Below are positions 8,659-43,724 of a DNA stretch of 64,000 nucleotides, in pieces; position 1 is the first letter of the stretch; every line of letters begins with the position of its first letter. Position numbers and translations under genes: made by a program. The stretch is taken from NCBI GenBank assembly GCA_037447605.1, contig CM074810.1, forward strand, positions 3,010,880-3,074,879. The letters are read 5' to 3'. The notes beneath the pieces were generated by a model. That model saw only the letters and a list, made by a program, of their open reading frames with translations, did not search any database and had not been told where the DNA came from. This DNA comes from Zygnema circumcarinatum SAG 698-1b (Eukaryota > Plantae > Zygnematophyceae).

Positions 8659-10461
8659 TAGGCATTTGAAAAAACGAGAAGAAGCACCGGAACCAATTCA
8701 AAAACTTCTATTACTAAACTTGCTTGGTGTGCGAAATTGATAGTTAGAACCGTACGAGGAGTTGCTTGTGGCTATTTTCAATGAAACCATGGCTCTGTTT
8801 CACTTGTTTGGTAGACCCCTTGTGCTTAGTTTTGCAAGTTGTGTGTCTATTAAGGTTTGTAGGATTGCAGCGCTCTCAATGGCATTGGTGCGGCCATATA
8901 AGGCACTGCCTCTGTGTGGGAATGAGAGAGAGAGAGACGGAGGGAGTGTGCGTGCGTAGAGTTCACAGTCAACAGACATCGAAAAACGTCTTGCAAGGTT
9001 TTAGGCTATGACGTCTCGCAATGTTCAATTGTTCAAATCGTCCAATGAGATTTTAAGGACTTACCCCCTCGGGTCTCTCTGTTTCTCTCTACTTCTCTTC
9101 CTCTCTCCCCTCTCTCCGTCTCGCCCTCTTTGGTCTCCTTGCGTCCCCCTGCCCCTCGACCTGCCTCTCTCCCTCTCCCCCGCTCTCGACTTTTCCAAAT
9201 TTCAAAGGTCAGAAACGATGTCAGCATTCATTAGGAAAGACAGAGACGGGCGCTTTCATTCTGAGCCCATCCTTTTATTTACAAATTCGGCCCTCTCCCA
9301 CAATTGAGGCAGATTTCAACCCTGACTTCAGCCAGAGCCTTGGCCACTTCCTAGCTTTGAAAGCGAAATTTTAGTGCTTCAGAACTGCCCATCCACCACA
9401 TTACAACTTTCAAACTACTGACCTGCCAAATACTCCCATTCTCAATGTTTCTGCGTATCCTAAAGGGGCTAAAACAGGGCCCCATTCCCTTAGTAGCTCT
9501 GCTCCACAAACTTCTCCCGCCTGCACAACAATATAAAAGGAAACAAAATCAGTCCCAGCCCTTCAAATTAGGCACACACTCGCATGACGACTCCCTCATT
9601 TCGTTTCGTCTGAATACATGTCACAGTTTAGCCGTCCTTCAGCCCTCCCTCGTCGAAATCCTTGTCGTCTCCCTCTCCCCTCTTCCCTCTCCCTCTCCCA
9701 TTCCCTCTTCCCAATCCCTCTCCTCTCCTTCGATCAGCCCTCCCCTTCAGGAAGCCACTCTCCCTCTCTCACCTGAACAGCTTCTTCCCGCGATGCCTCC
9801 AACCCCCTGTCACTACTCAAAGACGGAGTGGTCCGCCATGGGCCTGCAGGAAAAGAGGAGGCCGGCAAAAAAGCAGATGAGAATGTGATGGGAGAGAATA
9901 ACGAGATGTTTCAGACTCCTCAACATCGTCATTGTGGAGACGCAGCTGAAGGATCCATGTAAGGGATCCACGTCAAGAAGGAAGTTAAAAAAGCCTTGCA
10001 ATAACTGCAGCAATGCAAAACGCAGGCAATGGCAGGAGTCTACAACCAGTAACTCTTCGAATTAGTTTCCTTAATCGCGTTTTCTTGCAGCTGTTCATTC
10101 TAAGCATCAAATAGTAAACAAATAATCTTCAAATAAGTCAAACGAGCACCTCTGTGAGGTAATGCTGCTCATTCATTTCAAGCCTTCGACACTGCATTAC
10201 AGTTGTCGACAATACTTACCTTCAGAAGAGAGAGAGAGAGAGAGAGGAGAGACAGAGAGGAGAGAGAGGAGAGAGGGAGAGAGGGGGAGGAAGGGGGAGA
10301 GAGAGCGGGGGAGAGAGTAAGGGGGGAAGAGAAAGGGAAAAAGAGGGGGAAAAAGAGGGGGAGAGAGAGGGGGAGAGAGGGGGAGAGAGACGGCAAGAGA
10401 GAGAGGGGGGGAGAGAGGGGAAGAGAGAGAGGGGAGAGAGAAGGGGAGAGANNNNNNNNNN

Positions 10462-13039
10462 GGGAGGGAGGGAGGGAGGGAGGGAGGGGAGGGAGGGAGG
10501 GAGAGAGAGATATAGAGAGAGTGAGTGAGTGTGTGAGAGAAAGGGAAAGGGAGACTCGTCTTGCAAGCTCTTTTTCTCCTTCGTTGACTCCTTTCCCTAC
10601 CTTTCCACCTACGCAAGCTCTCCCCTCCCACACTCTCTCTCCCTCTGTTCTTACGCCCTCTCCCTCTTTTCCAACCTCCCCCTGCTCCCTCCTCCCCCTC
10701 CCACCCTCACCATGCTCTCTCTTTCCTTCTTCACACACTCTACCCTCCCTCTCCCCCTCTGTTTCCTCCCATCCTTTCCATGCTCTCCCTCTCTCCCCTC
10801 GCTCCATCCCCCTTATCTGCCTCACCTGATGGCAGAAGGGCGCTCCTCAGTCCATGCATCTATTCGAGTGAGTCTTCAGCAGATCGTCTTTGCTCGCATT
10901 GGCCAGCACCTCCCCTTACTCCTTCACCTCTCCTCCGGGGCTTTGTGTGGGAGTCTCTCTCTCTCATAGTTCACAAAACCTCGATGCGGAATCTTTGACG
11001 GCCTTATCTTCTTACCCTGAAGGCATGGAACGACGAAACTAGAGTAAGAGAAGCAAGAATGTATCACAGAGAAGGACAGTAGCATGATAGTGTAAAAATG
11101 ACAAATTGCAATTGAAGAGATGCAATGAAGGAGGAGAAAGAAAAGAAGGCAAGGAAAAATGTAAGAAAAAAGGGACGACCAATGTAATAAGGAGAGGGAA
11201 GTGGGAGCAACTAACATACCAATCATCTTGGTCGTTCTCTTATAGAGTAGTGTCTCAATTCAATCTTTTCCTTTCTTCTTCCCTGATTCAGGTGTGCTAT
11301 AAGCACACATTATTCTTTTATTTTTGACGGCATTTTCTAAAACACCTTTTGCCTGAGAAGGAAACTTCCCCACAACTCCCATAGGCGATACGTCATCGAC
11401 ATGTCCATTTTTTCCCCTTCCTCTCAAGGCTCGAGCTAAACCATCAATGGTGGAAGGTTTAACTGATTTCATCATAGAGCGAACATTCCGCATTGCCGTT
11501 TGGACATCTTTGTCACCCTCGTACATGTTCCACAAAATTTCAACAACAATAGGATACATGCGATTCCACCAAGCATTTTTCCGATTATTATCTGCTCGTG
11601 GTCCTGTACTATACCAGCGTCTTACACCATAAAATGCCATCAATTCGATGATGGGTTTCTTCCCTTCAGGTCCAACTATCCAGAATTCAGTCCATAAACT
11701 GTCGATATCTTTGTGCAAGCCAACTAAATACCTCTCTAACCCCATNNNNNNNNNNGGGAGGGAGGGAGGGAGGGAGGGAGGGGAGGGAGGGAGGGAGAGA
11801 GAGATATAGAGAGAGTGAGTGAGTGTGTGAGAGAAAGGGAAAGGGAGACTCGTCTTGCAAGCTCTTTTTCTCCTTCGTTGACTCCTTTCCCTACCTTTCC
11901 ACCTACGCAAGCTCTCCCCTCCCACACTCTCTCTCCCTCTGTTCTTACGCCCTCTCCCTCTTTTCCAACCTCCCCCTGCTCCCTCCTCCCCCTCCCACCC
12001 TCACCATGCTCTCTCTTTCCTTCTTCACACACTCTACCCTCCCTCTCCCCCTCTGTTTCCTCCCATCCTTTCCATGCTCTCCCTCTCTCCCCTCGCTCCA
12101 TCCCCCTTATCTGCCTCACCTGATGGCAGAAGGGCGCTCCTCAGTCCATGCATCTATTCGAGTGAGTCTTCAGCAGATCGTCTTTGCTCGCATTGGCCAG
12201 CACCTCCCCTTACTCCTTCACCTCTCCTCCGGGGCTTTGTGTGGGAGTCTCTCTCTCTCATAGTTCACAAAACCTCGATGCGGAATCTTTGACGGCCTTA
12301 TCTTCTTACCCTGAAGGCATGGAACGACGAAACTAGAGTAAGAGAAGCAAGAATGTATCACAGAGAAGGACAGTAGCATGATAGTGTAAAAATGACAAAT
12401 TGCAATTGAAGAGATGCAATGAAGGAGGAGAAAGAAAAGAAGGCAAGGAAAAATGTAAGAAAAAAGGGACGACCAATGTAATAAGGAGAGGGAAGTGGGA
12501 GCAACTAACATACCAATCATCTTGGTCGTTCTCTTATAGAGTAGTGTCTCAATTCAATCTTTTCCTTTCTTCTTCCCTGATTCAGGTGTGCTATAAGCAC
12601 ACATTATTCTTTTATTTTTGACGGCATTTTCTAAAACACCTTTTGCCTGAGAAGGAAACTTCCCCACAACTCCCATAGGCGATACGTCATCGACATGTCC
12701 ATTTTTTCCCCTTCCTCTCAAGGCTCGAGCTAAACCATCAATGGTGGAAGGTTTAACTGATTTCATCATAGAGCGAACATTCCGCATTGCCGTTTGGACA
12801 TCTTTGTCACCCTCGTACATGTTCCACAAAATTTCAACAACAATAGGATACATGCGATTCCACCAAGCATTTTTCCGATTATTATCTGCTCGTGGTCCTG
12901 TACTATACCAGCGTCTTACACCATAAAATGCCATCAATTCGATGATGGGTTTCTTCCCTTCAGGTCCAACTATCCAGAATTCAGTCCATAAACTGTCGAT
13001 ATCTTTGTGCAAGCCAACTAAATACCTCTCTAACCCCAT
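10462..13039. repeat. Tandem 1294-bp-offset duplication (10462-11745 = 11756-13039), each copy preceded by a 10-N gap
   Basis: Identical ORFs at offset 1294 (10529/11823, 10780/12074, 11260/12554). The first copy ends exactly at the N gap. Probable assembly artefact. Confidence 0.85.
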
Positions 13040-15764
13040 CGTTCGCCTGCCTTGCCCTTGGCCTGCTCTTCCCTCTTCTGTCCTTTGTTGCATGTCGCTC
13101 GGCATGCCTTGACTTCCCTCCTCCATACTTGGCCCCATGCTCGGCCCCATGCCCATACCCTGCCCCATGCCCATGCTCGGCCCCATGCCTCCATGCATGC
13201 CTCCTTGCATGCCTCCCTGCATGCCTCCCTGCATGCCTCCCTGCATGCCTCCCTGCATGCCTCCCTGCATGCCTCCCTGCATGCCTCCCTGCATGCCTCC
13301 CTGCATGCCTCCCTGCATGCCTCCCTGCATGCCTCCCTGCATGCCTCCCTGCATGCCTCCCTGCATGCCTCCCTGCATGCCTCCCTGCATGCCTCCCTGC
13401 ATGCCTCCCTGCATGCCTCCCTGCACGCCTCCCTGCACGCCTCCCTGCACGCCTCCCCTGCTCCTGCACCTCCCTGCATGCCCTCCCTGCATGCCTCCTG
13501 CATGCCTCCCTGCATGCCTCCCTGCATGCCTCCCTGCATGCCTCCCTGCATGCCTCCCTGCATGCCTCCCTGCATGCCTCCCTGCATGCCTCCCTGCATG
13601 CCTCCCTGCATGCCTCCATGCATGCCTCCTTGCATGCCTCCTTGCATGCCTCGTTGCATACCTCCCTGCATGCCTTGCCCCCAGCCTTCTCATCATTACA
13701 CAACAAAAAAATAGACTTTTGAAAAAGTTACAACAAGTGTAAACATGAAAAAGACTGCAATGAAAAGGAGGACAAAGGGGAACAAGATTCCTTGTAAGTT
13801 TTTGTTTTAGAGTGATAAAACATAGTTTTTTACCACCAAAGATTGGCTCCATTCCTCAATGGTTGATACTGTTACAGGGCGACCCCTTTCATATGCCTCC
13901 TTCATCTTCTTCCCCACTATCTTGGATGCACTCGCGAAATTGGAAAATTCTTCACTGAAAAAACATCCTCAACACACACAGCATAGAAAACGAACCAAAC
14001 AAAAGTAATTAAAACAAGATCATATAAGTGATGATGATGATCGATAGTAGTTCCTTTTGAAATATTATTTTTCAGTACAATAAGGTAGAAAACTTCCACA
14101 GCAATTCAACAGAAGTTAAATGACAACCAAAGAATGTTACTCCCCACTCCTCACCTTCGAAACTCTTCATTCTTCGAAAACATTGAAATTTCTGGAGCAT
14201 ATACTGCGTCTTGCAACAGAATACATGCAAAATAATGGAGCATTTCCACAAAGGCTTCTGCAGAAATCAGCTGCTTGCTAAAAGCCAGTTTACGGTTCCT
14301 CTACACAAAAAAAAAGCACAAATAAACAAGTAAGAAACGTTAAAGAACTATGACATAAACAAGACAAGAATAAACGATAAAGAGAAGAAAGAAAGAAAAA
14401 GAAAAAAAAAGGTCTACCAATAAAAAAAGCAAAAACATATGATGAAGATGCTACAAAGATGTTACGAAAAAAAGTCAAAAGATAGCTTGAATATGATAGA
14501 TTACCTCCCGTACAGCAGCTTTAAGCCCGGGAAGAAAAGGGAAGATCTTTGTCACAAGAGTTTCACTCGGTGCAAGAGAAGCTCGCTCTATGAAATAATT
14601 TCTGTCACCTTTATCCCCTGGAAATCCTGCAAGCAAAAGTGCAATAGGACGGGCAGTACACCCCCCCAAAATTTTTGCCAGAGCCCTACTAGAGCTTATA
14701 TTCGAACTCCCTGCACACTTGATATCAGCTAAAGGACAACCGTGTATAGCTGCTTCAAATTTTGCAGCTTCACAGAATATGTCCAAGTCGTCTAAAGCAG
14801 AAACATCCAACTCTTCAAAAATTTCAGTTATGAATGTCTGATGGTCTTGATGAGTAATTTGAACCACTGTCGAATCTTTTGACGGCCACAATAAAGTCTC
14901 AAACCTGCAAACAATTCACAATTGACAAAATTGTATCAATAAGAAAGAAAACACGTTTATACAGTTATTGGAAACAGAAAAAACTGTACATATACAACAC
15001 GTTGTAGTTGATTGGATAAAATTGAACTCACCAGTCTTTATTGTTGAGAAGGTTTGGAGGAGGTTCTTTTAATACATTGAACCTGAGGAAAAGCAGTCGT
15101 GCAATCCATCCTTGAACGCAAAGAAGCGGATCTTTATGTCTGAATGCAGATGCATACTGGGTAACACCGGGAACATTTTTTTCCCCCCCATGTAATATTA
15201 TCCGTAAGGCTGTACAGGGGGATGGGCCAACAGCTGTGGTTGGATAATCTTCAGTATAAAGATCAACTAATCGAACACCTCTCAGGTCATCTCCTCGAAA
15301 AATCATTTGCTTTGAAGCAGCAACCATACTACCAAACTTCAGATAAATTTCATCATCAAATTTGGCCATGTGTCTTAAAATCTTTTTGAAGCCCGCAGGC
15401 TGAAGTGCTCGTCGAAGATCAAAGTAGTTCCTATAGACATAAAAAGAACATACTATTAATAACGTAATATATTGAGAGGGGAGAGTGGTGGGCGAGAGAG
15501 AGAGAGATAGAAACACAGAGACGGAGGGAAAGAGAGAGAGACAGAGAGAGAGACAAAGAAGGAGAGGTAGGGGGAGAGAGAGACAGAAAGAGAGACAGGG
15601 AGGGGAAAAAGGAAAAAAAGTGACAAAGAGGGAGAGAGAGAGTACAGTTATACATACCGTTGACTAGACGGTATGAACCGCCGTTCTTCCGCGCCGATCG
15701 CAAACTCGTTTGCAACTCCCTCGTCCGAATAAGGACGACGACGAAAGAAAGGGGTTGCCATTCC
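12554..15764 (-). CDS. Crypton/Ndc10-type tyrosine-recombinase-fold protein with (MQGG)n tract and C-terminal GCR1_C DNA-binding domain; catalytic residues substituted
   Basis: GT-AG exons 15658-15764, 15032-15430, 14505-14904, 14155-14300, 13834-13954 and ~13690-12554. Translation: MIFRGDDLRGVRLVDL...GPSPCTALRIILHGGEKN..G..QYASAFRHKDPLLCVQGWIARLLFLRF...PPNL...DWF; LLAGF...YFIERA...IFP; ILLQDAV; DIDSLWTEFWIVGPEGKKPIIELMAFYGVRRWY...RKNAWWNRMYPIVVEI (GCR1_C-like). The splice phase into the last exon and a net frameshift in the repeat are unresolved. The true 5' end is uncertain (candidate ATG at 15761). Confidence 0.8.
13190..13672 (-). repeat. 12-bp coding minisatellite (ATGCAGGGAGGC = MQGG), about 40 copies
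   Basis: catgcctccctg units on the + strand, with single-base indels at ~13455-13500. Confidence 0.92.
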
Positions 15765-16551
15765 CTGAATAGAAGCAAGGAGCGAGTGAAAGGAATAAGG
15801 TTACAAAGAGAGAAGGGGAGAGAGAAGGGACCTCTCATTAGAGGGAAAGAATGAGAGGGAGAAGTAGAAGGAAGGGGAGAAGGAAAGTGAAAAGAATAGG
15901 GGGGGAACGGGGAGAGGGCGAGATAGAAGGAGGGTGCCAATTGCCATCAATAGAGAGAAAGAGAGTTCAAGAGCGAGGCCTCTGTTTGCATCCATTAGAG
16001 GCAGGTCGGGCAGGCAAACAGAGCGGGCAGGGCAGGCAAGGTAGGGCAGGGCAAGGCAGGCGAGGGCACGCAAAGTAAAAACGTAGAATAACAGGGAGCA
16101 TTTGTAACTAAGTTAAAAGGATTTAAATAACTTGAATAGGAGGGCTAAAGGTAACCAGTGCTAGACGTGTCGAGTCAATAGAATAGAACCACTGAATGAC
16201 ACAGCTACTATCTTTATATTTTCATAAGCAGCAACAACAATACGCCTCAAAATATTTTGAAAGTGACTTCATAGAACAGTCTGGAAAAATCAACCAAAAA
16301 AAAATACCTTCATACCTTGTCCTTCCCTCCTCACATCTCAAATGCAGCATAGCATTGGCAGCAAATGATGCCATTCAGATGTGACATTTTCCACAAGCTC
16401 CTTTTTCCCTCCCTCTTTTTTCCTTTCCTACCTTTTTATTTTCCCTCCCTCCCTCTGCTCCCCTCCCCACCCTCCCCGGCATAAAATGCTGATGAGAGGT
16501 AAGCTTCAAACGGCAATTTTTCGCAGCCAGTTAGCACATAAATTCACCGAA

Positions 16552-16745
16552 GGATGGATGGATGGATGGATGGATGGTTGGATGGATGGATGGATGGTTG
16601 GATGGATGGATGGATGGTTGGATGGATGGATGGATGGAGGGATGGATGGATGGGTGGATGGATGGATGGATGGTTGGATGGATGGATGGATGGATGGATG
16701 GATGGATGGATGGATGGATGGATGGATGGGTGGATGGATGGATGG
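16552..16745. repeat. (GGAT)n microsatellite
   Basis: ggatggatggat... with occasional ggtt/ggag variants. Confidence 0.95.
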
Positions 16746-16817
16746 AGGCGTACCTGCAGCAACGGGCAGTGCGTGGGCGCAGCCACACAACGTTCTCCAC
16801 GTCCGTCCGATCGGCTT

Positions 16818-16997
16818 CGCAGGGAGGGGCGCAAGCAGGGAGGGGCGCAAGCAGGGAGTGGCGCAAGCAGGGAGGGGCGCAAGCAGGGAGTGGCGCAAGC
16901 AGGGAGGGGCGCAAGCAGGGAGTGGCGCAAGCAGGGAGGGGCGCAAGCAGGGAGGGGCGCAAGCAGGGAGGGGCGCAAGCAGGGAGGGGCGCAAGCA
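16818..16997. repeat. 16-bp minisatellite GCAGGGAG(G/T)GGCGCAA, ~11 copies
   Basis: Directly visible tandem array. Confidence 0.9.
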
Positions 16998-17295
16998 GGC
17001 AAGCAGGCGAGCGGGCCCCTCGCTTGGGCTATGGCGGGCGGAGGGCAGGGGGCGGCAGGGCGTTCAAACGCGGCAGCCAAGTCCACGAAACCACGAGGAG
17101 GAGGACCCGCCGCGCGCTCTCCCGCTCGCTCTCGAAGGAGCCGTTGCGTTGCGCGGAACGCGGACAGCGGACAGCACCGAACGGCCTTGCCAGCGTGGCA
17201 CCGACGTGGCGAAGTCGATCCCGGTTGATCTTTGGCATGGTGCCAGCGTGGACACAATGATCCTGTGTAAATTGTAAATGTAAATAAAAGTGTGG

Positions 17296-17450
17296 AAACT
17301 TTCATTGAACTCGCGATGGCGAGGCCATCAAATGTACATGGACAAAGGCAAAATGTGGAACCACGAAGGACTGGTCACAAAGGACCAAATGTAAATAAAT
17401 GTTGTAATGTAAATTTGATGGCCTCGCCATCGCGAGTTCAATGAAAGTTT
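17296..17450. repeat. Perfect 38-bp inverted repeat with 79-bp spacer
   Basis: 17296-17333 AAACTTTCATTGAACTCGCGATGGCGAGGCCATCAAAT, and its exact reverse complement at 17413-17450. Confidence 0.95.
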
Positions 17451-17496
17451 GCGTTGCCTCCTGTGTATGGTTAGTGTTTAAAGATATTATAATTTT

Positions 17497-18441
17497 GGGT
17501 AGTGATATTTCCACCCCTTTTTTGGATCCAAACACCCCTTCCCGGCCGGGCAGATTTCAAAAAGGATTAAAAACGGAAAATGCTTTTTTCACACCTTTTT
17601 GGAATCGATACCACCCTCCATCAGCAGATTTTATTTCTGCGAAACAAGGAAAATGATAACCCGTCGACCCATTTGAATATCCCGCCTACCTGAGTTTTTT
17701 TTCACGCGTGCGGTCAATCGCAGCCGTCGATTCCCTCGCAGATCGCAAACGGCAGATCACTATTTGATCGGCAGCCGGGCTCGGTCACAGCGCATGGCAC
17801 GTGCCCACGTATCCCGCCAAAGTCGCCTCAAAAGTTGTTTCGTACAAATGTCGTACGGTCGCAACTTTGAAGAACCCAAATTTCGTACATTGAGAGCTTG
17901 GACCAATCAAAATTTTCCACGTTAAAAATGTAACACGTGGCACCTGTTGATTGGCTGGGAGCTAACAATGACGAGATCTCGGGCCGATCGACGCGCGCAC
18001 TCGCACGTGCGATTCGGCTTTGACGGGACTCGTGGGCGCTTTCCATTCGCTAAGATCGAGCCGGGCTGCAGATCGAACGGTGACCTGCAGTGATGCGATC
18101 TGCGAGGGAATCGACAGCTGCGATTGACACACACGTGTGAAGGACGGACACCGGCGAACAATCTCGTGGCGGACGGATCTTCCACTTCGAGCGGATTCGG
18201 GCTGGCAGATATTTCTTTCCCTCAAAAAAAAATTTCAGCTAGGCGGGATACAGTATTCAAAATGCAGTGACGGGGTATCATTTTCCTTGGTTAGCAAAAA
18301 TAAAATCAGCCGACGGAAGAAGGTGGGTATCGATTCCAAAAAGGTGTGAAAAAAGCATTTTCCGTTTTTAATCCCTTTTGAAATCTGCCCGGCCGGGAAG
18401 GGGTGTTTGGATCCAAAAAAGGGGTGGAAATATCACTACCC
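17497..18441. mobile_element. MITE family A, complete 945-bp copy, long TIRs starting GGGTAGTGATATTTCCACCCC
   Basis: TIRs of ~190 bp, with further inverted similarity to ~290 bp. Flanks ATAATTTT (17489-17496) and CTAATTTT (18442-18449) form an 8-bp TSD with 1 mismatch. No coding capacity. Confidence 0.88.
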
Positions 18442-18468
18442 CTAATTTTAATATATATTCTAAATTTT

Positions 18469-20555: not shown

Positions 20556-21311
20556 GGGGGCGACTATTTACAGTGTACTTTATTCTGAATGTAGTGTACG
20601 ATTTCACCGGGCAGCAAAAAAAGGTTTTTTTGGCGAAAAATGCTGTTTCACACTTTTCAGAATAGATACAGACCTTTTTTCGTCGGATGTACGGATGGTG
20701 ATTTGAAATGTACGAAGCGCGCGCGTCTACAAGGTGTAAGGGCGCAACACGTGGAGCGACATGATTGGTCGCGGCAACATATGACGTGGCAAGTATGTTT
20801 GGGACCGTGACGTGACGAAAAGAGACGCGACAAAAGTGGAGTCCGTGGACGGCTGTCGGAAATGGCGGGAATTAAAACTGACAGAAAATGATAGGGCACA
20901 TAACGTAGTGTGTTTCAGNNNNNNNNNNTAAAACTGACAGATTTTTCCTGAAACACACTACGTTATGTGCCCTATCATTTTCTGTCAGTTTTAATTCCCG
21001 CCATTTCCGACAGCCGTCCACGGACTCCACTTTTGTCGCGTCTCTTTTCGTCACGTCACGGTCCCAAACATACTTGCCACGTCATATGTTGCCGCGACCA
21101 ATCATGTCGCTCCACGTGTTGCGCCCTTATACCTTGTAGACGCGCGCGCTTCGTACATTTCAAATCACCATCCGTACATCCGACGAAAAAAGGTCTGTAT
21201 CTATTCTGAAAAGTGTGAAACAGCATTTTTCGCCAAAAAAAACGTTTTTTTGTTGCCCGGCGAAATCGTACACTACATTCAGAATAAAGTACACTGTAAA
21301 TAGTCCCCCCC
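20556..21311. mobile_element. Foldback/MITE family B, TIRs >350 bp starting GGGGG(C/G)GACTATTTACAGTG, perfect 8-bp TSD TTTGCAAA, 10-N gap in the centre
   Basis: TSD at 20548-20555 and 21312-21319. The arms are near-identical inverted copies with a few substitutions. Removing the element restores the 5S-downstream consensus (CATTCAAA..TTTG..AATCGCA.ATGTTATGGCT). Confidence 0.9.
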
Positions 21312-35600: not shown

Positions 35601-36984
35601 CCAATTTAAACTTCTCTTTGTCCAACACTACTTTATCGAAGTTGGATGGAGTAAGAACAACGACATCAGAGGGAGCAGCTCCGATTGAAGCCGACGTGCC
35701 TGCATTGCATAAACCTTGATTCAATTTAGTAATTTTCAATCGAGCTTCTAATACATTAGACGACTTTTGCAATGCCTTTGCAGGATGTTCTCAACAAAAC
35801 ACATTTTTCTCAGTGAATAGAATTGCTCCTCTTCACAATAATGTGGGAAAACTTCAAGCTCCAGTGCAGACTACTATGATAAGAGCACATCGGACTTCAT
35901 CTAGTTCCAACATGACAAGAAGATCAAAGGTATTCTACATTAACCAACAAAGCAAGAGACCCGTTTCAAGTCTGACAGTTTGTGCACATACCAGCCTTTT
36001 CATTTACGAAGTCAATGATATCTTGTGCAGTGCGGCCCCCATTATATCTGCATCCACATTGGATGAAAAACAACAAATTAAGTTTACGCTTTGAAGTCAG
36101 TCAGCATAATACCGGCTACCTTGCAAAGGAATATTTGGAACATATAATTTACACCTGACAAGATATACACTAATTAAAGCGGTTGATAACTGGTCCACCA
36201 GTAGACGAGTTCTTAAAATGAGGAGACATCCTGCACTTACGCTTCAGGCTCAAGCGATCCCTTAGGGAAAAACTTCAACGTAGGGTATCCTGACACGCCA
36301 AACCGCGAGCAGAGTTCCTTGTGCTCATCACAATCTACCTGCTCCCAAAAAAATGAAAGACCCAGTCAGAATGACAATGGTTCCAGAATGCCTTTGCACA
36401 AAATGAGAGCTTTAGAAGGGCTTAATAAGCATATAAAAGCAGGGGGAGAGGCATTCATTACCTTGGCAATAACCGCGTTCTGTTTCTTGAAAGCTGTTCC
36501 AACTTGGTCGTATTCTGGTGCCAGCTTCTTACAGTGCCCACACCTGAGATAGTGCCAGACCACATCATATCAGTAAAAAACGAATAAGTAGAAACAAAAT
36601 AATAGTATCTCAAACCTGAAGCTGAATCAGAATAGCAGTCAGCTACACGCCAGTGAAGCTAAGCCATTTCCCCTCCCCTTGTTTAGGTATTTGCTTTGAG
36701 AATATCCGCCGAAAAAGCACATCGTGCAGCTTTATAGACCTCTTGCATGTTGCTCAACTCTGAGCTCCCATCATCAAGTTGACCAAATATCCAAATTCCT
36801 GGACCTTCACCACTTACCAAGGGGCGTAAAACTCCACGAAAGCGTCTTTGCCTTTTCCAACAAAGTCATCAAAGTTGTCAGGGTTCAGCACCGTCACATC
36901 GGATGCCTCCTCTTCAGCTGAAGAAATATAAACGAGTGCAGAGAATGTCAGCCATAGCAGCAGGATTCTGCTGCAGGCAGCCAT
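32645..36984 (-). CDS. PDIL2-1: Protein disulfide isomerase-like 2-1 (two thioredoxin CGHC domains plus ERp29 C-terminal domain)
   Basis: Signal peptide [42 protein letters not shown] (36817-36984, ~36460-36545); [28 protein letters not shown]; YNGGRTAQD; second [16 protein letters not shown]; [12 protein letters not shown]; [14 protein letters not shown]; [17 protein letters not shown]; [15 protein letters not shown]...KEED*. Confidence 0.93.
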
Positions 36985-43168: not shown

Positions 43169-43724
43169 CTACTTTTCGTATATACTGGCTGCCATCTCTT
43201 CCACTTCCTTCACTACCTCCTCATATTCCGACAAAAAGGCTGCTGCACTCTCTTCATCCACTTCTACCTTCGCTTCCTTTGGAGGCTTCGGCAGAATGAG
43301 CATGCAGCTGGTTGGTCTCTTTGTGGCTCCAGCTGCTCCCAAATCCTGACGAAAAAACACACAGTCAATGCACTGTTTTCTTGAGGAAAAATGTCTTACA
43401 TTCCTAGTGTTTGATTCTCTCATTGTGGTCTTGATGAAGCATGCAGGGTGTCTGATGAAGACTGTCGGCAAACGGAAGAGTACAACAATCCAAACATTTC
43501 ACTCCCTGCATAGAAATTAGCTCTCATGAATGAAATGAGGTCGAGGCAACTCACTTCCTTGGAAGGCACATAGACATAGGGAACATTGGCCTCTTCGCAG
43601 AGGATGGGTAAATGGGTGATGACATCAATTGGAGATATATCGCCAGCTATTAGGCACAGCCTGCATATCGCAAAGCACCAAAAGGGACAATCGAGTTAGG
43701 GGAAACAGGAGAAGGGAGGAGGCG

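Follow-up and report, generated by a model that had tools for sequence, protein, structure and literature searches.

Gene structure and transcription

The stretch of DNA analysed here (the window) comprises 64,000 nucleotides (nt) of the genome of the zygnematophycean alga Zygnema circumcarinatum SAG 698-1b, namely positions 3,010,880 to 3,074,879 of contig CM074810.1 in assembly GCA_037447605.1, and all coordinates below are counted from its first letter. Within its 64 kb the window carries a single copy of a minus-strand gene at 12554-15764, with alternative 5′ exons reaching to ~16845, and the predicted product resembles the tyrosine recombinases (YR) of Crypton transposons in its fold-defining residues but not in its active site. 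An earlier note, made from the letters of the window, had put this gene forward as a candidate domesticated Crypton.

Spliced contigs were mapped over 13640-16500 using the RNA-type runs X7, X8 and X12, which come from three studies, together with the DNA run X2. Six GT-AG joints were found across the contigs of the three RNA-type runs and none in the DNA run, and the exons of the gene were placed as follows.

16754-16845, minus strand: exon B, an alternative 5′ exon of at least 92 nt (a 92-letter loose end at 15767 in X12 matches 16757-16786, followed by GT)
16316-16425, minus strand: exon A, an alternative, untranslated 5′ exon (joint 15763/16315 in X7 and X8; contig pieces 16315-16425)
15658-15764, minus strand: exon 1, which carries the start codon (15759-15761) and codes for 34 residues and 2 further nt (junctions present in X7, X8 and X12)
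15032-15430, minus strand: exon 2, first half of the recombinase-like (NDC10_II) domain (Pfam, joints and alignments)
14505-14904, minus strand: exon 3, remainder of the recombinase-like domain, where the predicted dead site lies (alignments; RNA and DNA contigs identical to the window)
14155-14300, minus strand: exon 4, a conserved helical segment after the recombinase core, with the motif ILLQDAVY (joints)
13834-13954, minus strand: exon 5, ending in phase 0 (joints 13954/14155 and 13664/13833; translation)
12554-13665, minus strand: exon 6, the last exon, 1112 nt, entered in the GGMQ frame (stop codon of the C-terminal-domain frame at 12554-12556)

In plus-strand coordinates, the joints between exons 1 to 6 in the RNA-type contigs lie at 15429/15657, 14902/15030, 14300/14505, 13954/14155 and 13664/13833. 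The last of these was present in X8 and X12 and has the final exon begin at 13665, within a 12-nt tandem array; beyond this exon 5/6 joint the contigs run on for 841 nt in X8 and for 385 nt in X12. All of the junctions of the six or more GT-AG exons that the earlier note had read at 12554-15764 were therefore recovered, and the exons it proposed were exact, but a spliced 5′ exon had been overlooked. Between 60 and 75% of the sampled words of the query were present in 14 runs and, because this share matches the exonic share of the query (~0.68, or ~68%), the last exon is transcribed too. None of the four mapped runs displayed a base difference or indel relative to the window over 13640-16500, so the odd residues described below are not assembly errors. 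Exons 1-5, which have canonical GT-AG borders, translate into 390 residues in frame and free of stops, in agreement with the previous statement that no stops or indels interrupt the recombinase-like exons. Taken together, this is a real gene whose transcripts are correctly spliced in several independent data sets.

Both alternative 5′ exons join at 15764. On the exon A route the ATG at 15761 is preceded, at a distance of six codons, by an in-frame TGA, while the exon B route leaves the frame open with this ATG (listed open reading frame (ORF) 16544-17305) and may give the protein a low-complexity N-terminal extension. A (GGAT)n array at 16552-16746 (~49 copies) and a 16-mer array at 16819-16999 (~11 copies) lie in and around this alternative first exon and produce long spurious ORFs on both strands. 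Unspliced intron 4 (13927-14184) was also seen, in an X8 contig of depth 24.6 compared with 45-53 for the spliced form and in a low-depth X7 contig, suggesting partial retention of this intron.

The recombinase-like core and its relatives

The CryptonF/Ndc10-like recombinase that had been recognized by eye was borne out by profile comparison, in which exon 2 alone matched Pfam NDC10_II with an E-value of 3.8e-10 (39.8 bits, cut-off 26.3). An exhaustive HMMER search with exon 2 returned 218 proteins at E <=1e-3, with a top identity of 47%, and NDC10_II was present in every one of the library matches that were scanned with Pfam. The full-length matches, among them sequence from the fungus Emergomyces, were CryptonF-type proteins in which NDC10_II stands alone or together with GCR1_C, and the alignment spans the entire CryptonF protein, C-terminal domain included. 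No Pfam match to DUF3504 was found for the window gene, and neither the exon 2 nor the exon 3 profile matched a recombinase or Ndc10 sequence in the PDB.

The closest matches were exon-sized fragments on five metagenome contigs from ENA GROS21 assemblies (L001-L005). Exon 2 of the window gene is 44-48% identical to these, exon 3 33-35% and the C-terminal domain 34%, and exon 4 is 45-51% identical to L001, L002 and L004. The exon ends of the metagenome genes fall at the same residues as those of the window gene, and all five loci retain the full catalytic set of R, K, HxxR, RW and Y. An N-terminal domain is carried by the library protein P0002 and by close metagenome relatives, and segments of this domain from P0002 and from fungal proteins matched L001, L002, L004 and a further metagenome locus, L006, which was the one distant locus found when the exon 2 profile was searched against the metagenome contigs. 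The same N-terminal segments gave no match upstream of the gene in the window, where exon 1 encodes only 34 residues. The loci L001, L002/L003 and L004/L005 amount to three or more similar forms of a Crypton gene that is intact and split by introns, with YR and GCR1_C-like domains and a guanine-plus-cytosine content of 41-43%, like that of the window gene; they are probably variants of a multicopy element of an uncultured alga.

In phylogenetic trees the window gene grouped with the intron-containing metagenome Cryptons, apart from the fungal Cryptons, and any domestication would be independent because the gene is not placed with the latter. Its terminal branch measures 0.78-0.97, against 0.40-0.53 for the intact sister group (~1.8x), which fits relaxed or changed constraint, given that free decay would have left stops. 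By the alignments and trees, the gene evidently derives from a Crypton-type tyrosine recombinase.

The state of the active site was read in a register taken from an ungapped 133-column alignment that sets exon 3 beside three intact relatives and from a 57-sequence alignment, and the codon coordinates were checked. In the 57-sequence alignment, 37 relatives read R-K-H-R-x-W-Y, while the window gene reads R-E-D-C-S-S-L. The codons and motifs concerned are as follows.

15295-15297, minus strand: first catalytic Arg, kept (FRGDD), in exon 2
15181-15183, minus strand: Glu in the canonical Lys column, the next codon being Lys, in exon 2
14781-14783, minus strand: His replaced by Asp, in exon 3
14772-14774, minus strand: second Arg replaced by Cys, in exon 3
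14703-14708, minus strand: Arg-Trp replaced by Ser-Ser, in exon 3
14667-14669, minus strand: Tyr nucleophile replaced by Leu, in exon 3
HLFR in the relatives: DIFC in the window gene
GRWH in the relatives: GSSN in the window gene
AMAYLG in the relatives: AKILGG in the window gene

The first Arg is the sole surviving catalytic residue, and its retention in FRGDD, as previously noted, is upheld by the alignments. The parallel claim that the Lys is kept in GEKN is doubtful: the region reads GGEKN in the window gene compared with SGKKN or NGKTN, close relatives having Lys-Lys, so that the canonical column holds Glu and a Lys stands only beside it. The replacement of HxxR by DxxC and of GRW by GSS, and the absence of the Tyr (AKILGG), were recovered in both the ungapped and the 57-sequence alignments, and no alternative HxxR or Tyr was found elsewhere in exon 3. 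The loss of five of the six catalytic residues predicts a protein that cannot cut or rejoin DNA.

The pattern of loss was compared with that expected under neutral decay. Among non-catalytic columns conserved at >=90% in 37 active-type Cryptons, 12 of 12 are kept in the window gene, against one of six catalytic columns (Fisher p 7e-4). At >=80% conservation the counts are 25 of 28 and one of six, respectively (Fisher p 1e-3), and two of the three non-catalytic losses at this level adjoin the His. Neutral evolution was simulated with substitutions only over 441 codons, starting from the coding sequence of an intact relative. The probability of encountering no stop was 5% at 0.05 substitutions per site and 0.4% at 0.1, and the probability of losing five of six catalytic residues exceeded 10% only at ~0.3 or more substitutions per site. 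The joint event, at least five of six catalytic residues lost with no stop gained, had a probability of <=3e-4 at any simulated divergence, a value that would drop further because the simulation omits indels. Neutral decay is a very poor fit to the sequence, and the data indicate that the active site was specifically ablated while the fold-defining residues and the reading frame were kept by selection. On this point both the column counts and the simulation side with the earlier note, which had preferred selection for a non-catalytic fold to decay.

A second inactivated relative was found among expressed sequences. P0015 is a 526-residue ORF on the transcript contigs L007-L009 (SRR8128904/5/8), and its site reads R-R-D-A-E-A-Y, the K, H, R and RW having been lost and the Tyr kept. 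Its LDVF carries the same His-to-Asp change as LDIF of the window gene. P0015 is 30% identical to the window gene, retains the N-terminal domain and lacks a GCR1_C-like tail, and when used as a query in the libraries it returned only itself. It was placed as sister to the window gene with support of 99/92 and is possibly a second domesticated lineage in the same clade. A shared ancient inactivation was considered and is not claimed, since trees separating the two were as likely once the catalytic columns were removed and a mixture model was applied (approximately unbiased test, p 0.55-0.56).

The C-terminal region and the surroundings of the gene

Downstream of the recombinase-like core, all or most of each of three features lies in the last exon.

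13184-13675, minus strand: 12-nt tandem array encoding (GGMQ)n (Tandem Repeats Finder, 41.6 copies, 94% matches)
13440-13500, minus strand: irregular junction within the array, with units of 11, 13, 10, 6 and 13 nt
12692-13036, minus strand: divergent GCR1_C-like C-terminal domain, an intact ORF in its own frame

The C-terminal domain matched L001 in a tblastn search with an E-value of 1e-20 and 34% identity, over a frame that is free of stops for ~160 codons. Because its ORF is intact and matches L001 at this level, the domain was coding until very recently at least. The domain of the window gene itself had no Pfam match even at E 10. Its L001 counterpart scored 21.5 bits on Pfam GCR1_C (PF12550; model positions 6-79), which is below the cut-off of 23, and another member of the clade, P0041, scored 23.4 bits against the same cut-off. 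Comparison with four fungal GCR1_C domains by hhalign gave 71 columns in the expected register with an E-value of 1.4e-4 and a probability of 53%. In a search of the ESM Atlas, GCR1_C clusters made up the main named set at a low level of recognition, which is a lead only, and an AlphaFold model of the domain built from a four-row alignment reached a predicted local distance difference test (pLDDT) score of 50.6, too poor for use. It is plausible by remote homology that the domain is GCR1_C-like. The GCR1_C-like ending described in the earlier note can be kept in that sense, but it has no Pfam match of its own and, as assembled, lies one base off the frame of the preceding exons.

The (GGMQ)n array is specific to the window gene and has no counterpart in its relatives (L001). 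At the irregular junction the reading frame continued from exon 5 departs by one base from that of the C-terminal domain, and one base more in the array would give a product of ~760 residues in which (GGMQ)n continues into the conserved domain. The irregular units of the array differ by single G's within G-runs. On the strength of these single-G differences and of the intact, conserved C-terminal ORF, the likeliest origin of the frame break is a mistake in the assembly or a change of very recent date.

What looked like a duplicate of the 3′ part of the last exon (ORF 11260-11925) was rejected. Positions 10452-11745 are a base-for-base copy of 11746-13039, 10-N gap included, giving a tandem duplicated block of 1294 bp in which each copy begins with a 10-N gap, and this block is almost certainly an artefact of scaffolding or of a redundant contig. 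Inverted repeats at 1-336 and 17928-18262 were also considered as element termini and rejected, as they are part of a foldback element and a related copy and do not bound the gene. The foldback element, similar to a miniature inverted-repeat transposable element, measures ~970 bp (17484-18454) and lies ~700 bp upstream of exon B, with terminal inverted repeats of 139 nt at 94% that extend to ~190 nt; its related copy stands in inverted orientation at the start of the window (arms 1-336 versus 17928-18262). Further along, an inverted repeat of 303 nt that is 99% complementary occupies 20616-21250, its arms being 29 nt apart around a 10-N gap (20919-20928), and this could be either an assembly palindrome or a real hairpin.

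Two exon-sized ORFs look, to the eye only, like parts of ordinary host genes: one with a CGHC motif of the thioredoxin or protein disulfide isomerase type (36495-36554) and one with an L7Ae/NHP2-type segment (43423-43695). They suggest that the Crypton-derived gene sits in normal gene space.

Interpretation and comparison with known systems

The reading preferred here, at a probability of roughly 0.6, is that the locus is an exapted Crypton-derived gene and not a working or merely decaying transposon copy. An intron-containing Crypton with YR and GCR1_C domains, CryptonF-like, has lost its N-terminal domain together with the Lys, the His-x-x-Arg, the Arg-Trp and the Tyr. Its product, by analogy with Cbf2/Ndc10, Gcr1 and the animal DUF3504 proteins, would be a non-catalytic DNA- or chromatin-binding protein in which DNA is contacted through the divergent GCR1_C domain as well as through the dead recombinase fold, and the Gly/Met/Gln-rich (GGMQ)n stretch may serve as a flexible linker or interaction region. 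The losses of H, the second R and Y follow the same pattern as in known Crypton domestications (PMC3212892).

Several observations weigh against exaptation. No orthologue or closer paralogue was found in the searched protein libraries and metagenome contigs, although these libraries may omit sister genomes; more specifically, exon 3 had no match among 90% protein clusters, the exon 3 profile none among the metagenome contigs, and the C-terminal domain none in the libraries. Copy number was seen only within the window, where a 3980-nt DNA contig spanning the gene is uniformly covered at a depth of 30.6, a figure that stands without a genome-wide baseline; repeat-derived contigs reach depths of 100-700, and this comparison is suggestive only as regards copy number. 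Membership of the C-terminal domain in GCR1_C is reached through sub-threshold or transitive matches. Finally, exon 6 at 1112 nt is 2 mod 3, which leaves the C-terminal domain one base out of frame as assembled, and the assembled product is 601 residues long with an (EACR)n tail, a stop at 13030-13032 and no GCR1_C domain. The domestication proposed earlier is thus supported in part, namely in its Crypton origin, its ablated site and its expression; the status of a single-copy host gene with orthologues and a role as a transcription factor or at the centromere stay putative.

Three alternatives were weighed. The locus could be a defective or non-autonomous Crypton copy that is transcribed by chance, its frame having been left open by a recent active ancestor and not by selection for a new role. 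Such a copy would be in keeping with the activity of CryptonF in another green alga (PMC9977147), the lack of an orthologue in the searched libraries, the missing N-terminal domain, the frame break in exon 6 and the foldback element upstream. It is nevertheless unlikely, as five of six catalytic residues have been replaced and yet 12 of 12 top-conserved structural columns are kept, and neutral evolution for that long gives stops with near certainty. Moreover, no recent active parent is visible, because the nearest sequence is only 47% identical in exon 2, and splicing is clean in three studies. An explanation that is equally hard to favour holds that the gene was once exapted but has lately become a pseudogene in this strain, with the array frame break real and the protein ending in the (EACR)n tail in place of GCR1_C. 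The length of exon 6 (1112 nt, 2 mod 3) and the stop of the exon 5 frame at 13030-13032, before the conserved domain, would then be taken at face value, and the array, being nearly perfect, is mutable. Single-G differences in G-runs, however, are the typical signature of an assembly error, and the C-terminal ORF runs for ~160 codons without a stop at 34% identity to L001; the RNA contigs that run 385-841 nt beyond the exon 5/6 joint do not allow the frame to be read.

A further alternative grants the protein a function but directs it at the transposons themselves. Catalytic mutants of tyrosine recombinases, enzymes that work as tetramers, poison the complex. The dead recombinase might act as a dominant-negative 'poison subunit' that attaches to Crypton ends or enters the recombinase tetramer of resident Cryptons, restraining their transposition, and it might be kept by the host or by the elements. 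Retention of a DNA-binding fold from which catalysis has been removed is what such a role would call for, but with 33-47% identity to the nearest intact Cryptons a shared DNA specificity or co-assembly is doubtful, and the N-terminal domain of the active relatives is absent. This explanation is the least likely of those weighed here. If true, it would describe a recombinase-derived transposon repressor in the green lineage, a role undescribed for any Crypton-derived gene.

Exaptation as a DNA- or chromatin-binding protein thus remains the favoured account, and its significance lies in what Crypton domestication has given elsewhere: the yeast kinetochore protein Cbf2/Ndc10, transcription factors such as Gcr1, and conserved vertebrate regulators. 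Cryptons as such are already known from the green lineage; what would be new there is a non-catalytic gene derived from one. In a limited literature search no report of such a gene in the green lineage was found, only active CryptonF elements having been published. Should this be a conserved host gene, the fold would have been turned to DNA binding, once catalysis was lost, for a third and independent time. The gene would then also provide a tractable case in an alga, in which the steps of domestication could be compared between relatives that are intact, an expressed gene that is dead and perhaps other dead paralogues.

Among the systems available for comparison, the metagenome loci L001-L005 and L006 are the nearest relatives and share exon boundaries and a distinctive C-terminal motif with the window gene. 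They differ in keeping the N-terminal domain and the catalytic residues, in lacking the (GGMQ)n array and in their shorter branch. An active CryptonF from the green lineage, CryptonF-1_cRei, has been described in Chlamydomonas reinhardtii (Lopez-Cortegano et al. 2023, PMC9977147). It resembles the window gene in type and in lineage, but is autonomous and mobile with CACCG termini, whereas the window gene is predicted to be dead and neither termini nor copies were seen in the window.

The background on CryptonF elements and on Crypton domestication in yeasts and animals that was given in the earlier note holds against the literature: CryptonF elements combine YR with GCR1_C, four yeast domestications are recognized (Hot1/Msn1, Gcr1, Cbf2 (Ndc10) and Cdg1), and the animal DUF3504 genes are Crypton domestications that have all lost the Tyr and the second Arg and in most cases the His (Kojima and Jurka 2011, PMC3212892). 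The animal genes (KCTD1, KIAA1958, ZMYM2-4, QRICH1 and WOC) are, like the window gene, derived from a Crypton recombinase and expressed, and their losses of Tyr, second Arg and His match those seen here. They are conserved across jawed vertebrates, while no orthologue of the window gene was found in the searched libraries, and they come from another Crypton group and lack GCR1_C.

The parallels in yeast are Cbf2/Ndc10 and Gcr1 of Saccharomyces cerevisiae. Unlike these, the window gene belongs to a separate clade, shows no detectable sequence similarity to the solved Ndc10 chains and has a (GGMQ)n array but no N-terminal domain, and any centromere or transcription role of its product is putative. 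In common with the window gene, however, both yeast proteins have a recombinase-like centre with an unpreserved catalytic site and a C-terminal GCR1_C-type domain, in the same order, the latter domain being recognized in the window gene by remote homology. Both work as non-catalytic DNA-binding proteins, and the Pfam family matched by the window gene is the one built on domain 2 of Ndc10.

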